Origin: Rebecca billardiae RCC1528
Taxonomy: Eukaryota > Protista > Haptophyta
Assembly (NCBI GenBank): GCA_965240325.2
Contig: OZ251236.1
Location: forward strand, 1,240,001 to 1,304,000
Length of the DNA stretch: 64,000 nt
Reading direction: 5' to 3'
Of this stretch, positions 5,053 to 14,096 are shown one piece after another; positions within the stretch are counted from its first letter, which is position 1; each line of letters opens with the position of its first letter. The position numbers and the translations under genes were made by a program. The notes under the pieces are model-generated. The model was not told the origin of the DNA, searched no databases, and saw nothing but the letters and a program-made list of their open reading frames with translations.

Positions 5053-7513
5053 TCACGCGACAGACACGTCGACATGCACGTCGTCCTCCCCCTCGGCGAG
5101 CGGGTGCGGCTGCGCCGGTCCGGCGAGCAGCGGCGCCTCTCGCGCGTCCTCCACGCCCGAGTCGACGAGGTTGGTCACGTCCGTCACCAGCGCCCACAAA
5201 TACGGCGTGAAGAACTCCTCGGCGTCGTCCTCCTGCTCGTACGTGAAGCGCAGCTCGTCGAGCTGCCGCAGCGCGCTCGGCCTCCACTCGCGCGCGGCCT
5301 CGTCGATCGCCGCCATCACCTTCTCCACGGTGAGCACGGCGGTGGCGCTGTCGGTGGCCGCCTGCGCGTCCGCCACCGTCGTCGGCAGCGTGGCCTCGCC
5401 CGTCGGCCGCGCGCCGCCTGCGCCGCCGTGCGCAGAGACGCGCGCGTCAAAGTGCGCGAGCACCGCCTGCACGTTGGCGAGCGCGTCGCCCAGCAGCGCG
5501 TGCGCCGCGCTCGGCTCGGTGAAGAGCTGCTGCCGCTCGAGCAGCGAGTACACCAGGTGCGCGTTGAGCGCGAGGCTCGGCCCACTGCGCGCGGCGCGGG
5601 CGCGGGCCCAACCAGCCGCGGCGGCGCGCGCGCGCGTGCGAGTGAGCGGCGCGCGTGAGCGGCTGCTGTCGCGGCGCACGCGGCTGCGCGCACCTCAGCG
5701 CCGCGTTGATGATCTCGAGCGAGATGCGCATCGCGTCGGTGCACGCGCTCTGCTCCGCGTTGAGCTGCGTGAGCTCGACCGCCGTCTCGCCGGCCGAGAT
5801 CACCACGTCGCCCGCCGCCACCGCCGCGCGCTGCTCCTCCAGCAGCTCCTCCGCGCGCGCGCCCAGCTTGGCCTGGCGCTTGGCCAGCCGCGCATACAGG
5901 TTGATGAGCGACAGTGCGGCGTACGGGTGCAGCGCGCGGTACGAGCCCGCCATGTTGGCGAGCGCGGCGAGGCAGTTGGTCGAGACGTACGGGTCGCGCC
6001 GCGCGCTCGAGTTGAGGTTGGCGTGCACGAGCCGGCACAGCACGCACACCGCGAGCGAGCCCACCGAGATCTGGCCGAGGATGCGCTCGCGGAACCACGG
6101 CACGCGCGGCAGCTGCATCGCAAACGCCGCGCCCACAAACGCGCCGTCCTGCGAGAGGATGAGCAGCACGATGAGCAGCATGTACATGCGCGCGGGCGGC
6201 GGCGCCTTCGCCGTCGCCGTGCCGTACACGCCGCGCAGCAGCGGCATGAGCAGCAGGTCCGCATCCGTGCGCGTGAGCACGTACCGCAGGAAGGGCCGGT
6301 TCGTGTGCAGCAGGTGGTACAGCAGGAGCACCGACGGCTCCGAGGGCAGCTGCGCGCACAGCACGTCGTACAGCGACTGGTAGTCGATCGCGCACGCGGG
6401 CGGGCCCGGCGCGCCGCCGGCGCCCTCGATGTCCGCCGCTCCGCCCGGCGCGGCGGCGAGCGCGGAGATCGACGCGTCGTCGGCGACGAGCGCGAGCGTC
6501 TCGGCCGCGCGCGTGCGCGCGGCAAAGCCGACGAGCGGGCGCAGCGCCGCGGGCATGTCCTGCGCGAGCACGAGCAGCAGGCAGAGCGAGGAGGAGTGCA
6601 GCGTGGGCGGCTGCGTCGGCTCGCCGGGCGTCGTGAAGAGGAGCGCGAGCAGCTGGCGCGGCAGGTAGAGCACCGCTGGGAGGATGCGCCAGCCGCCGCC
6701 GCCGTCAGCGTGCGCGGCGGCGGCGCGGCCGGCGCCGCCCTCGGCGCCGCCGCCCTCGGCGCCGCCGGCGTCGTTGGCGCCCTTGGCGCGGCCGGGCGAG
6801 CCGGCGTCGGGCGTCTCCGCCGCGCGAGGCACGTACACGTCGCGCGCCGAGGGCGGCGGCGGCGGCGCGCGCACGTGGTGCGCGAGCAGCGCGTGCGCGA
6901 GCTCGGCGGAGCGATAGGGCGAGCAGAGCGAGCACGCGAGCATCGGGATGGGCGGCGCGTCGAGCGGCGCGTACATCTGCGCGGAGAGGAGCGTGAGGGC
7001 GAGCAGGCAGACCTCGGTCAGCAGGGCGAGCGTGCCCGCGCGGCGCTCGATCCCGATGATCGCGTCCACCAGCGCGCGGTACGCCTCGCCCGCGAGCCCG
7101 CCGTCCGCGTCGTCCGTCGCCTCGGAAGGGCGCATCAGGTGCGCCGTCCGGAACGCGTCCATGTCAGGCGCGACCCGCATCAGGTAGCGCAGGAAGATGC
7201 GCGTGACGAAGAGCGCGTTGGCTGCAATCGCCGCCTCCTCGTCCGTGAGCACCTCGCGCGGGGCCGCGGTGGCGTCGCTCAGCCGCTTGATGGCGCGCCG
7301 CATCAGCTTCTGAAAGTTGCACGTGTGCGGGTTGTTCGCCGCGAGCTGCGAGCAGAGGCCCTCGAGGATCTCGTCCGAGTGCGAGACGTGCTCCGCGCCG
7401 ATGCGCGCCGAGAGCATCTGCTCGAACAGCGGGTCATCGTCGGGGAGCGCCTCGAGGCCGACGAACGGGTCCAGCGCGAAGATGGCCGTCTCGCTGCTAG
7501 AGCTGTTCCCCAT
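5053..7513 (-). CDS. DYM: Dymeclin (2 exons; intron 5585-5693)
   Basis: MGNSSS myristoylation start; motifs NNPHTCNF, YMLLIVLLILSQD, RDPYVSTNCLAALANM, LEIINAAL, NAHLVYSLL, LRFTYEQEDDAEEFFTPYLW. A phase-2 GT-AG intron restores the frame. Confidence 0.9.
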
Positions 7514-7632
7514 GCTGGCGAGGGGAGAGCGGAGGTGGATGATGCCAAGTCGCAAGACTCGGCGCGGCGGTCCGGTAGCAGCGCGCGGAAGCTCCGGAGT
7601 CCCGGACACTACTACCATCAAGGTCTGGAGCT

Positions 7633-8241
7633 TATGGAGCGCTCGTTGGAACTTGAGCGGGGGTGGAACTTGACACCGCATTTCCCAGCGAAGTGCCCCA
7701 TCTCGGCGGGGCTGGCACGGTCGGCACACGCTCCTGAGCGCTCGCTTCGCGGTGCGGCAGGCCTTGGGCAGCCCAGACAGACATGCCGCGACCGAATTAC
7801 CGGGCCATGCGCGCACCACACCCGCGCTACATGGCCTGCGCGCTGGACGACTGAGAGGCAACGCCGAACCACTGCATTCCACTGCCCCGCATGCACCCCG
7901 AGTCACCTTCAGAGGGCGTCGACGAGCGCAGAGCGGGTGCGTGGGAGTTCGACCAACTCGTGTACCTTCTTACAAGCACCAGCGGCGAGGTCGCAAGCCG
8001 AACCTTGACCAGCCGTGGAACTTGAGCTGGTCGGCAGCAAAACCACCGTTTAACCCGGATCAAGTTAGCAGCGTGCGAGGAGGAGGCGCGGTGCGCGTCC
8101 GCGGCTGGCGAGAGGCGTCCGGACCGTGCCGTTCTCGGCCGCGCCCGCGCGCTTCCCGCCGCCGCAGGCCCCGTGTACGCCCGTCGTCGCCCTCGCCGCG
8201 CGGGCGCCAAACCGGCGTCAAGTTCCAACGAGCGCTCCATA
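7633..8241. mobile_element. Non-autonomous TIR element (MITE-like) with probable TA target-site duplication
   Basis: Perfect 24-bp inverted repeat TATGGAGCGCTCGTTGGAACTTGA (7633-7656) / TCAAGTTCCAACGAGCGCTCCATA (8218-8241). TGGAACTTGA recurs at ~7664 and ~8016. No transposase ORF. Confidence 0.8.
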
Positions 8242-8434
8242 CTACTTTCACAGCGGAAACACTGTCGACGAGACGAATGCGAACGACATTGAATGCTGAT
8301 ATGCTTTTTGCGCCTTTTAGTTTTTAGTGGCCAGCGCATGCAGTCAGCTACAGAACTTACGACACAAAACCGTATTACAGTGACTACAGCAGTACTGCTG
8401 TAGCCTGTAGGTCTCAGACCGGGCCCAGCGAGAC

Positions 8435-10613
8435 TCATAGCATTGTCTGCGGACTACGAGCTCCGGCACGACCACCAGGGCCACGCGGCGGTCTCTGCGG
8501 CACTGAGGGACCGCCGGCAGAGCGAGAGGCAGCAGCGGCCACGCCAGAGTCGCCGTGCCGGCCCGCATCCGCGGCTCGACCTCCAGATCCGCTCGTCATC
8601 ACGCCATCGCGCTCTGAGACCGAGTCCGAGCGTGGCAGTCCGATGTGGTGCGCGGAGGCCATCCGTTCCGACGGCGCGTCGTGCCCGAGCGCCGCTTGGC
8701 CCTCGTCGTGGTGCCCGAGCTTGACGTGCATGAGCTGCCCGACGTAGTCGTGCAGCGTGTGCTCCGCCTCGTGCGCGGGGTCCACGCGCTTGCACTCGCC
8801 CAGGATGGCGCGCAGCGCGCTGTTGAAGTGGTCGGCCCCGCCAAAGCTGCCCTCGATGATGGCGCGCAGGTGGCGCTGGTCTTCCTCGTGCGCGCACTCC
8901 GCCCGGCGCACGTCGACGCCGGGCAGCGCGGCGTCGAGCGGCAGCGCGGCGCCGTCGTCCCCGCGTTGCGCCATCATCAGCGTCATCGAGGCGGCTGAGC
9001 CGCCCATCTCCACGTACACGTACAGCTCGACCAGGCACCCTGATGCGGCGCCCAGGGAGGAGGGCGGAAGGGGCGGCGCACACGGGGCGGTCGGCCTCGC
9101 GCGCGCGGCGTGCGCGCCGCGCGCGGGAGCGACGCCGCGCGCGCCGCGCCGCGCCGCGCCGGCTCGAGGAGCGCCCGCGCGCGCACAGAGCCGGCTCAGG
9201 TACGTGTCCCCGCAGATGGCGACGCACTCCTGGCACGCGGCCACCCACACGGGCAGGCACTCGAGGCTCTCCGCGATCGACGACTGGTTGATCGAGAAGC
9301 GGTCGAGCCAGACGAGGGGCTCGCGGCCGTGCTCGCGCACGAAGCGGCGGCGCCAGGCCTGCAGCTGCGTCCACTTGCGATGCGGCGAGTCGTGCCAGCT
9401 GCGGGCGGGAGCGCCGCCGCGGCCACGGGCGCAGCACGGCGCGCGGGGGAGGGAGGCAGACTCAGGCAGGGCGCGCGCGCGTTTGCATGCACGCGTCGCG
9501 CGCGCGGGCTCGCGCGCCGCGGGAGCGCAGTCCGCGGCGCCCGCACGGCGCGCCGACGCGCGCGCACGAGTGGGAGATGAAGGCATCCGCTGCGCCCAGC
9601 GCCGTCGGCCGCGTGAGCGCGTGCAGCGCGGGGTCAGGCTCGTTCGAGCTGAGGTGCTCGTAGCTGACGCGCGCGAGCGAGACGCATCGGAAGAGCCGCG
9701 CCGCCTTTGCCGCGACCACGTCCGGCGTGGAGGCGGAGAGGAGGCTGCCGATCCCGGCGGCGGTGCGCACGGCCTCGCTGCGGCTCGCGAGCCACGCCTG
9801 CGCGTACGCGGGCACGCGCGGGTCGTACAGCATCGCCCCGACCCCGATGAGCTGCAGCGCGTTCACCTGGTGCGTCACGTCCCAGATCAGAGGCAGCGCT
9901 GGGTGCAGCAGCAGCGACGCGCCAAACCAGAGCTCGGCGTGCACGCCGAGCAGCAGGAAGGTGACGCCGATGACGTGGAGCAGCCGCTCCAGCCGGAGCC
10001 GCGCGGGCATCTCCGCGCGCGCGGACGGCGCGAGCACCCACGTGGCGCACGCCACCACCAGCCCGCAGAAGGCGAAGAGCTCAGCGAGCAGCACGCTGCA
10101 GCGGCACGGCACGCGCGCCTCGAGCATCAGGTCGACGCAGGTGCCGTGGCGAGGCTGAGCGATCGCGCCGATGTACGCGACCTCAGCCGCATAGACGAGC
10201 GCGAACGTGACCCCGAGCCCAAGCGACAGGAAGACCGCGCCACGCACCATCCGCGGCTGCGCGGGAGTGAGTGACAGCAACACGATTGTCAAGCCGAGCT
10301 GGTTGATCGTCGGGCCGACGAGCTGCGTGGCGAAGACATTGTGCACCGAGAAGTTCGCCAAGTGCAGGACGACGACAAAGGACACCACGCAGATCGCGGC
10401 GCCCACCACGCGCAGAGGCAGCACGACCGCATAGTGGAAGGCGCGGCCTGCTGAGTGCAGCTCACCGAGGTGCGCGCGGATATGCTCGGCGTCGAGCGGA
10501 GCGTCGCCGACACAAATGGCGCCCGAGCTACGCGATCCGGGGGCCTGGCGAAGGCTTGTCAGCTGCGGCTCCAGGCGCTGCGTTCGCGACTTCGACGAGC
10601 ACGCGGCGCCCAT
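8435..10613 (-). CDS. Multi-pass membrane protein with C-terminal TIR-like domain (3 exons; introns 9399-9567, 9040-9186)
   Basis: About 6 hydrophobic segments. Splicing at canonical GT-AG sites yields DAFISHSWHD...VWLDRFSINQ...CLPVWVAAC...VAICGDTYLSRLWCLVEL, matching the TIR betaA/betaB/betaC-alphaC pattern. Confidence 0.75.
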
Positions 10614-11360
10614 CCTGCCGTCTCTCCTGGGATGCGCAGTGTTTCATCGACCTCATCAAATCAAGCTGCACCGGCAGGTCGGGCCTGGATTTCTTTGCTG
10701 GCAAGGCCCGCAAGGGTGGGCCTGATACACGATTGGGTGCATCAGTCTTGGCCATGTCTTCCAGCGCCTCGCGTTCGCGAGGCGTGCCCGAAACAGCTAC
10801 ACACTCACCGGTGCCCTGGGGCACCGGCGCAACCCGCATCCAACACTCCGCATATCGCAGACACGACATATCCACCCGCGCTTGCACACGCACGCCCCCC
10901 CCCCGCCTGCTTGCTGACCATGAAAGGACTGGCCCCGGGTGCGGACGCCAAGCGCATGCTCATCCCGACACGACGGCGAACACCTGCGGTGTGCCTGTGC
11001 GGAGGCACTGGGGAGCGACACGCGGAGTGTGGGCCGCCCTCCTTCCTGAGCAGCGCCCGGCCCTCAGGTGGAGACCGCGCCCGTCCCGGCCTCCCCGCGG
11101 CGGCCGCGAGCCCCCCCCCCCCCCCCCCCCTTTTCCCCATCCTGCCCGTTTCGCGACAAACCCCTCTCCCCCCGAAACGCACGACGGGCCGCCGTGGTCC
11201 GGGGGACCGGCGGGGCCACTCCGGACCTGGGTTTTGAAATTTGATTTCAACCCCGCGCGCCGAAATGCCTTTGGCACCAGCACCGACCTCGCTCGCACCG
11301 CAGTGCTTCCGCACCCGCCCCCCGGCCCTCCGCAGCCCCGCGCCCGCCACACCGGCCACC

Positions 11361-12464
11361 ATGCCCCCTTACCAGCACGGCTTTTTCCGCGACCGTCTCA
11401 ACAGCAGGAGCGCCTTGAGCTTCTTCCCCTCTTCCAACAACTTCGAGCGCGGGCTGCAGGTGGAACGGCCGAGCACCCCCACCGCCAGGCGGGATGCGGG
11501 CCAGCAGATGTGCACGACGATGATCAAGCTGAGCGCGCGCTGCCTGAGCGACGTGGCGCCCAACTCGCAAGGCGGGCGACTGCTCTCAGGACTCACCCAG
11601 GACCCCAAAGGCAATAAGCACGTTTTCTCCTTCACCGGCTCGGTGCTCGAGAACATGACCATCTGCCGCCGCCTGGCCACCAGCCTGTGCATGCCGAACA
11701 TTCTCACGGCGTGCACCACGGAGCTCACGCAGGAGATGCTCGCGCTGTCGGCGGCCGACCTCGCAACCCAGGCGAAGGACGTGTCCCTCACGCTCCCGGT
11801 TAGCCCCACGATGACGCTCGTGCAGTTTCACAGGGCCCTCTACGAGCAGATCGTGCCCGACATCAACAAGTACGTGACCAACGGTGAGCACGTCGAGACC
11901 AACATCTACTCCGGCGGTGTGAACCTGATCTTCCTCCGCCTGCGTTTCATGCCCATCGACCCCGAGCACCCCATCTTCTTCGCGCCGCTCAAGCCGAGCC
12001 GCCGCATCGCCGGCGCCGCCCGCGTCCCACACAACCTGTGGGGCGTGCCGCCCGCGCCGCCTGTGCCGCCCGCGCCGCCCGCCGCTGCGCGCCGCCCTGC
12101 TCCTCAGCCGGCCGACCAACAGGCGGCGGACCCCGCCGGCCCGGAGGCGGAGGAGCCCGAGGGGGAGGGTTCGGACGATGCCATCCCGCCACCCCAGCCA
12201 CCAACCGCGGCCGCGCCGTCGGACGGGCCCGAGGTGCAACAGGCCAGGCCGGCGCTCGGGGAGTCCAACTACCGCCTGGTCCTGCCCCCCGGCGCCGCGG
12301 CAGCCGGCAAGCGCGCGGCGACCGAGCCGTCCACGCCGGCGGAGGAGGATGGGCCCTCCTCCGCTGGCGGGAGCGACGCCAAGCCGGCCAAGCAGGCTCG
12401 CACCGCGTCCCTCGGCGACCCCCCCCGTGACCTGGCTGCCGCCGCGCCGCAGTCGCTGGCGTAG
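11361..12464 (+). CDS. Intronless orphan protein (367 aa): globular N-terminal ~220 aa plus Pro/Ala/acidic tail; possibly element- or virus-derived
   Basis: ATG in GCCACCATG context, normal amino-acid composition in the N-terminal part, C-ending codon bias. No recognisable family motif. Confidence 0.55.
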   Translation: MPPYQHGFFRDRLNSRSALSFFPSSNNFERGLQVERPSTPTARRDAGQQMCTTMIKLSARCLSDVAPNSQGGRLLSGLTQDPKGNKHVFSFTGSVLENMTICRRLATSLCMPNILTACTTELTQEMLALSAADLATQAKDVSLTLPVSPTMTLVQFHRALYEQIVPDINKYVTNGEHVETNIYSGGVNLIFLRLRFMPIDPEHPIFFAPLKPSRRIAGAARVPHNLWGVPPAPPVPPAPPAAARRPAPQPADQQAADPAGPEAEEPEGEGSDDAIPPPQPPTAAAPSDGPEVQQARPALGESNYRLVLPPGAAAAGKRAATEPSTPAEEDGPSSAGGSDAKPAKQARTASLGDPPRDLAAAAPQSLA

Positions 12465-12517
12465 AGCCGCGCGCGGCGCTGGCGCGCCAGACGCGCCCGG
12501 TTGGGCAGCGCAGGCAC

Positions 12518-12652
12518 CCTCAGCGGCCAGGACGACGACTTCCTCAACGGCAAGGGCGACGACTTCCTCTGCGGCCAGGGCGACGACTTCCTCAACGGCA
12601 AGGACGACGACTTCCTCAACGGCAAGGGCGACTACTCCCTCAACTCGGCAAG
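12518..12652 (+). repeat. 24-bp tandem repeat, ~5.5 copies (G[A/G]CGACGACTTCCTCAACGGCAAG)
   Basis: Units start at 12531, 12555, 12579, 12603 and 12627; translates as (G/D)DDFLNGK. Confidence 0.92.
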
Positions 12653-14096
12653 GCCACTAGGCCGCGCACACCGGCCCGGGCGACCACATCCACTACCTGC
12701 ACTACGGCATCAACTTGAACAGCCTCGGACGACGACGACACGGGCAACTACATGATGACCAAGGCCGACGACGACTGCAAAACAGCGGCATCCCCGGGCG
12801 CCTACTACCTCAGTGACCGTGTGATCAGCATCGGTTACGACGACTCCCTCACCCGCGGCCAACGCGCTCCGACATCCTCCATTAACTCCATTCAGTACTT
12901 CGACAGACGAATCAGGAGAGCTGCGCCCTCGTGCCTGTGTCTTTAAATCATAGAATTGGTCCGGTCGCTCGCTCCGGCGCTCCGCTTTCTGAGAGCTCAC
13001 TTGGCCCACCGTCCTGACTTTCAACTTGGCTTGGTGCCTCCGCCGTACAGTAGTCCGGTTTCGGTTCGGTGGTTCGCGGGCTCGCGGCCCAAACGAATCA
13101 TCAACAGGATGGCGTCTCGCGTCAATCACGAGTAACGACCGGCTCGGGCGGTCTGGCGGCTCGGCAGTGGGAACCGGAAACGTGAGCGGTGAGGCGTTAT
13201 AGTTTTGGGTCCCCTTGCGGTGAGCGGCCAACACGCCCGCTCTTGTCCGTGCAGGGTTCGTCCTGTGCATCCGCAATCCCAACATGCGAGCAGGGTTCAC
13301 GCTTCAGGTGGTGAAAACGTTATTGCAAGGTCCATGCCATGGCCACAAGTATGCGATGGACCATCAAGCATGTCAGCCTCGGGAGATGGCCCTGTCGGCT
13401 CTACTACCGACTGTCGGATACTCTCTGCACTCGGCGCGCCACGTGTGGAGCACGCGCCGGCAACATTGGGCATGGATGATGGAAGGTCCCGCCCACCTCA
13501 AAGGCCGGCGGGGCTGGTCGCCAACGCTGAATCACGCACTCACTCGCGCGCCGTAGGTCTGCACGCCAGCGCGACACACGCTCGCTAGTAAACCGTTGGA
13601 GGCGTGGGCGCTGAGTCACAGCCCACATCTACGCACTGGTGTATGGCCGTGCGGCCAGGTGAGCAAGCGCCCAGGTGAGCGCACGAACAGGACCGTGGAC
13701 TTGGAACCCGTATACATCCGAACCGTTGGTACGGTTCGTGAACTTCTTGGTACGGGTATTCCCGTGGGTAGAGGTAGCGCAAACTTGGACCCTGCGGACC
13801 ACATCAACCGCGGTGCTCGGACCTCCCTGATGAGCCCTCTTTTTGACTTTTGCAGCTGCTCCTGCCGGTAGCGAGTAGGCGAGCGCGCGATGCCGACCTC
13901 CTCCTCATCAGGGCTCATCCCAGGCCCAGCGCCCATGCGAGCTGGGGCGACCGATCAGGCGGCCGAGACTTTGAAAGGCTATATATACTACCGTAACTAC
14001 CGCACAACGATGATCGTTGCATGTGCGGTAGTAGTTACGGCATGCGTAGTGACTTCACTTCAGATCACAGATGTCATCATCTCATCATCATCATGA

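Follow-up and report, generated by a model that had tools for sequence, protein, structure and literature searches.

A haptophyte gene for a probable six-helix membrane protein with a TIR-superfamily domain and a conserved glutamate

The gene described here lies within a 64,000-nucleotide stretch of the haptophyte Rebecca billardiae RCC1528 (GenBank assembly GCA_965240325.2, contig OZ251236.1, positions 1,240,001 to 1,304,000), referred to below as the window, whose own numbering is used throughout. It runs from 10613 to 8435 on the minus strand as three exons, between which lie GT-AG introns of 169 and 147 nt, and encodes a protein of ~620 residues. From its N-terminus of 60 residues the protein continues through six membrane helices and a helical linker into a TIR-like domain, and it ends in a tail that is not conserved. 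A first-pass annotation, made from the letters alone, had described a membrane protein fused to a TIR-like domain at this position. Its coordinates and residue strings proved exact, all of them lying at their places on the minus strand. The G+C content is ~68% throughout the window. On the comparisons set out below, the locus is a real, intact three-exon gene.

Exon 1 (9568..10613, minus strand, as are all features of the gene) was defined from its open reading frame (ORF) and translation and opens with the ATG at 10613 and the residues MGAACSSK. It codes for everything from the N-terminus through the six-helix membrane part and the linker to the first TIR-like domain strand, DAFISH, and ends in ...GAADAFISH followed by the TC of a split Ser codon. 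Intron 1 (9399..9567) is of phase 2, begins with GT, ends with AG and has the donor GTGCGCG at 9567. Exon 2 (9187..9398) reads WHDSPHRKW...VWLDRFSINQ...GDTYLSRL and supplies helices A and B together with strands B and C of the domain. It is followed by intron 2 (9040..9186), again GT..AG, which is of phase 1. Exon 3 (8435..9039) begins with (W)CLVEL and carries the rest of the domain, the tail and the stop codon TGA at 8435-8437. The second intron is itself an open, in-frame stretch of 49 Ala/Arg/Pro-rich residues between exon 2 and ...CLVELYVYVEMGG..., so that ORF callers of the prokaryotic style fuse exons 2 and 3 into a single product (P0001). The two introns share the start nonamer GTGCGCGCG and the end CAG. 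Both are extremely GC-rich, with low complexity of the GCGCGC type that was also recorded at 9094-9184.

Removal of the introns yields two split codons, TC|C for Ser and T|GG for Trp, and it is at these two points that the comparison with relatives is most informative. A word search with the read-through of exons 2 and 3 returned two full-length relatives, P0002 and P0003, which have the same layout and carry unbroken DAFISHSWSD and SRLWCLMEL. A second search, on this domain, returned 41 relatives; the profile and the counts of invariance use 31. When the exons were placed on the hidden Markov model (HMM) of these 31 public homologues, the tail of exon 1 occupied positions 3-14, exon 2 positions 16-85 (E 4e-29) and exon 3 positions 87-167 (E 9e-19). 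Positions 15 and 86 alone are left unmatched by the exons. Both are invariant in the family, as Ser and Trp respectively, and as these are the very residues that the split codons produce, both junctions are strongly, if indirectly, supported. BLAST of each exon alone against P0002 gave the same picture, with exon 1 aligning up to residue 368, exon 2 to residues 370-439 and exon 3 from residue 441. Alignments with homologues reach the last residue of exon 1. The splitting of the domain core by two introns, as first proposed, is thereby upheld, profile and homologues being continuous over both junctions. The comparison with homologues lies far beyond chance and amounts to strong indirect proof of the splice model. 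Neither in the coding sequence nor in the two introns does an independent public read assembly (Logan contig, ERR14847148) differ from the window.

The 3′ end of the gene is less sharply defined. The C-terminal tail (8438..8785) is of low complexity and is not conserved, and the profile match stops at residue 84 of exon 3. This leaves ~115 unmatched residues in the window copy, against a median of 23 in the relatives. The coding status of the whole tail, and hence the true 3′ end, is uncertain.

The fold of the TIR-like domain was modelled on the homologue P0002. An AlphaFold model of its residues 355-531, built with the 31-sequence alignment, reached a pLDDT of 88.5 and a pTM of 0.84, with strands and helices in alternation. 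A Foldseek search of this model against the PDB returned almost only TIR domains, headed by RUN1 (E 1.6e-4) and followed by SNC1, RPP1, SARM1, SPARTA, L6 and AbTir. The homologue's model thus has the flavodoxin-like arrangement with a parallel sheet that marks the TIR superfamily, which is the fold that had been anticipated. When the ESM Atlas was searched by shape, the same domain fold was found in haptophyte clusters labelled as TIR-domain fragments, in a cluster of H-NOX fusions and in oomycete TPR proteins.

The alpha-C Glu is the catalytic residue in SARM1, in plant TIRs and in bacterial TIRs. In the window copy the corresponding codon is GAG at 9026..9028 (minus strand), which lies within a motif of the WC..E type, WCLVEL, and represents the invariant E90 of the family. 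Without exception, the 31 relatives keep this Glu and the R.WC..E around it. In the homologue's model the WC..E motif is part of helix 85-96, directly after strand C. In a phmmer comparison the homologue's WCLMEL lined up residue for residue with the motif of flax L6/L7, likewise WCLMEL, and with that of ADR2, WCLDEL, at sub-threshold scores (E 0.4-0.5). The Glu of these plant motifs is the catalytic Glu of plant TIRs. The window copy keeps 19 of the 21 residues that are invariant in the family, including FISHSW.D, W.D, LP, R.WC..E and G. A TIR-like domain with an intact Glu, as claimed at the outset, is supported by the motif in the window, by its invariance and by the fold of the homologue.

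The domain family is more difficult to assign by sequence. Across the 31 relatives, Pfam detected HET weakly in 22 (best E 0.031), TIR_2 in 19 (best 2.7e-6) and TIR in seven. When ten relatives were scanned individually, P0030 alone reached the TIR_2 cut-off (28.3 vs 28 bits), the others scoring 12.7-21.7 bits. The single exons of the window match none of TIR_2 (PF13676), TIR (PF01582) and HET. The HET model (PF06985) gave at best 15.0 bits in a relative against a cut-off of 22.5, and its matches cover mostly profile positions 45-63 only. These results, together with the fold, support membership of the TIR superfamily with the Glu retained, in a place that, by sequence, is between bacterial/plant TIRs of the TIR_2 type and fungal HET domains. 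The gene very probably codes for a real protein in which six transmembrane helices are joined to such a domain.

The six-helix membrane core (9825..10490, minus strand; residues ~42-263 of exon 1) was delimited by AlphaFold, hydropathy and profile. The model of the exon-1 product, built with 30 homologous N-terminal regions, reached a pLDDT of 79 and a pTM of 0.71, with long helices at residues 42-88, 90-113, 120-151, 172-198, 204-236 and 244-263. In the hydropathy plot five peaks stand out clearly, and a sixth is less pronounced. The number of six transmembrane helices proposed from the letters is backed by both approaches. No convincing match to a solved fold was found for the core. It is followed by the helical linker (9597..9824; residues ~264-339), which connects it to the domain and contains nearly invariant alignment columns, with the consensus AA..AAL.G...A..FR...L...DL..N. 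In the model the linker forms helices at 266-276, 280-293 and 297-307, after which the DAFISH strand begins.

The N-terminus and loops 2-3 and 4-5 are rich in Lys and Arg, and conserved Cys residues are found in loop 3-4. In relatives that begin with a signal peptide and a C-type lectin domain, a further helix stands ahead of the core, seven in total, which would place their ectodomain outside the cell and the TIR-like domain inside. The charge pattern, the Cys residues of loop 3-4 and this extra helix together suggest an N-in, C-in topology with a cytosolic domain. The start MGAACSS fits the N-myristoylation pattern of Met-Gly, small residues and Ser at position 6. An acylation-type N-terminus is a weak point of the initial description: the residues do stand at the start of the ORF, but none of the untruncated homologues begins in a comparable manner. 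The charge distribution is compatible with a cytosolic N-terminus.

When the exon-1 membrane core served as query in a word search, the window's own ORF was the only match, a result of little weight given the length and word limits of the method. An exhaustive profile search with the core and linker gave 1,896 cluster representatives at E<=0.001, 1,304 at 1e-10 and 427 at 1e-30. The resulting family size of ~1,900 is a count of clusters at 50% identity in public data. The exon-1 ORF product itself (P0043) matched the core profile with 228 bits (E 1.8e-62). A set of 177 core-bearing proteins was examined, and 164 of these carry a TIR/HET-like domain, while the other 13 end no more than 94 residues past the core. 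These 13 are fragments, the window's own exon-1 ORF among them, and it follows that core and domain are obligately coupled. The window gene has the layout of this unnamed protist family, with core, linker and domain in order and alignable over their full length. No other copy of the domain was found in the 64-kb window.

Approximately one quarter of the core proteins have more than 200 residues N-terminal of the core. Twenty of these regions were scanned, and an LRR was detected in two (P0058 and P0171) and a C-type lectin in five, above the Pfam cut-off in P0029, P0041, P0099 and P0107 and below it in P0035. In P0058, P0171 and the four lectin proteins above the cut-off, a further membrane helix precedes the core, which gives an anchor of seven helices. 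One region carries a glycosyltransferase-like piece, and most of the twenty are without a Pfam family. The remark in the first-pass annotation that the protein lacks an LRR or Ig ectodomain thus holds for the window copy and fails for its relatives, some of which have an LRR or a C-type lectin. Named sources of relatives include E. huxleyi, Triparma and a sample of the MMETSP. No paper defining the six-helix core or its LRR and lectin versions was found among open-access papers and preprints. Within this receptor-like family of marine protists, which is very large and has hardly been studied, the window gene is a plain, minimal member.

A mechanism can be proposed for this family. The six-helix core would hold TIR-like domains at the membrane and control their self-association, thereby gating their activity. 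Once clustered, the domains would break down NAD+ or produce a nucleotide signal derived from it, and this may lead to a defence, stress or death response as the biological role of the protein. Relatives with an LRR or a C-type lectin and the extra helix would be the ligand-sensing versions. The window copy would be the core-only version, which might respond to a cue from the membrane or its lipids or might pair with relatives that possess an ectodomain. The NAD-cleaving step, an inference, is put slightly below even odds. The explanation as a whole, in which the identity of the gene and the NAD mechanism are blended, is given a probability of roughly 0.55.

Several observations weigh against this explanation. 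By sequence, the domain is as near to fungal HET as to canonical TIR. The biochemistry of HET domains was still listed as undetermined in reviews of 2023 and 2025 (PMC10197012, PMC12881547). Pfam gave zero matches for the single exons and for the read-through ORF, most relatives score under both the TIR and the HET cut-offs, and the family profile found nothing among the sequences of the PDB. The evidence for the fold comes from the homologue P0002, whose identity to the window copy is 51% in exon 2 and 34% in the conserved stretch of exon 3. Two family-invariant positions are changed in the window copy, namely Cys to Ser in WLDRFSINQ (WLDKACIDQ in the family) and Gly to Ala after LPVWV.

The domain could instead serve without enzymatic activity. 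The homotypic interaction module is the classical description of TIR domains in Toll-like receptors (TLRs) and MyD88, and in a comparable role the TIR/HET-like domain would act as an adaptor that recruits other TIR/HET proteins of the same genome, the Glu being structural. The best structural matches of the domain are catalytic TIRs (RUN1, RPP1, SARM1 and AbTir), and the Glu and its R.WC..E motif are as constant among the relatives as an active site would be. Both points argue against an adaptor, which is held to be unlikely.

On one side of the gene its neighbour (5450-7906, minus strand) is an intronless ORF with a full-length match to Dymeclin (PF09742, E 2e-80), a housekeeping function. 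The likely true start of this ORF is an internal MGNSSSSE, again with Met-Gly. On the other side a difference from the Logan contig is observed. This contig carries the whole gene and differs from the window at 8347 and 8284 only, both 3′ of the stop, and then joins 10724 straight to 12957, without the intervening 2,232 bp (10725-12956). The segment begins 111 bp upstream of the ATG and contains a neighbouring orphan ORF in which Gly/Asp repeats occur. At the junction the two sides overlap by 2 bp, TG.

The 2,232-bp segment does not behave as an intron: whichever register or strand is taken, GT-AG, GC-AG or AT-AC ends do not fit, and the contig retains both real introns. A transposon was also rejected, since terminal repeats, whether inverted or direct, are absent and the window holds no second copy. 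The segment is probably a presence/absence difference between haplotypes or strains, and an assembly shortcut is the less likely source of the gap. The gene had been placed at the edge of a repeat-rich accessory block. On the Dymeclin side this fails, and tandem repeats amount to just 14 short arrays in the whole window. The 2,232-bp segment on the other side lends the idea partial colour and no more.

It could also be postulated that the gene is a decaying or silent paralogue, a recently inactivated copy that yields no functional protein. The two substituted invariant positions, the ~115-residue tail without conservation in relatives and a segment 111 bp upstream of the ATG that is absent from another read set would all suit such a history. 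Against this, the three exons are open, both introns have canonical ends and 19 of 21 invariant residues are retained. Furthermore, the independent contig has the same coding sequence, its two differences falling beyond the stop codon. Inactivation is regarded as improbable. Little credence is likewise given to a reading in which the six-helix core is itself the effector, acting as channel or transporter under the control of the TIR/HET-like domain, which would then be its regulator and not the output.

TIR domains form a common enzymatic core of bacterial, plant and animal immunity, and to our knowledge the sensing of viruses and the resistance to them in marine phytoplankton are largely unknown. 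A broader and more speculative reading, held with low confidence, can be attached to the NAD-consuming domain. The core, which belongs to no Pfam family and has no clear counterpart among solved folds, may be an undescribed membrane module for sensing and oligomerization that gates a TIR/HET-type NAD-consuming domain in haptophytes, dinoflagellates and stramenopiles. The forms headed by an LRR or a lectin would then be a protist counterpart of TLRs that signals by an enzyme and not through adaptors, with the window gene as the minimal form. As the family lies between canonical TIR and HET, the activity of any member would bear both on antiviral signalling in algae and on HET-mediated cell death. 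The window gene offers a clean, minimal example of a multi-helix core joined to a TIR/HET-like domain.

The closest likeness by description is found in Gephyrocapsa (Emiliania) huxleyi. A 2025 study in New Phytol reports 15 virus-responsive TIR genes in this species, with a conserved Glu and with no NBS or LRR (PMC12489294). These genes are reported to have multiple N-terminal membrane helices, and their products are proposed to be receptor-like producers of a signal in virus infection. The resemblance is one of helices and Glu. A conserved six-helix core is not named in that study, nor is a family size given (PMC12489294). A single locus of this kind in the window is unsurprising, the architecture having already been mentioned for G. 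huxleyi.

The likeness to fungal HET domains is one of motifs. The FISHSW.D of the family resembles Y.ALSY.WG, its WLDKACIDQ (WLDRFSINQ in the window) resembles WIDALCINQ, and RLWC..E resembles RGWT.QE. The UniRef label of the E. huxleyi relative P0033 is that of a HET-domain protein, and haptophyte and stramenopile HET-like proteins have already been shown to bridge to TIR (Dyrka 2014, PMC4986451). In contrast, the best HET score is 15 against a required 22.5 bits and covers the strand-B motif only, and the domain has ~165 residues where HET domains have 220-240.

Identity to the TIRs of plant TNL and TIR-only proteins (RUN1, L6/L7, RPP1 and SNC1) is just 12-16%. The window protein also differs from plant TIR proteins in being membrane-embedded and in lacking both NB-ARC and LRR. 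In the family the strand-B motif, WLD(K/R)..I.Q, is HET-like, unlike that of plant TIRs. SARM1 and the bacterial TIR NADases (AbTir, ThsB and the TIR-APAZ of SPARTA; Pfam TIR_2) have partner domains different from those of the window protein, whose own activity is putative. TLRs differ in their anchor, which is a single helix compared with the six- or seven-helix core of this family, and the window copy has no ectodomain. The relatives with an LRR or a lectin nevertheless share with TLRs the logic of a sensor outside, a membrane anchor and a TIR domain inside.
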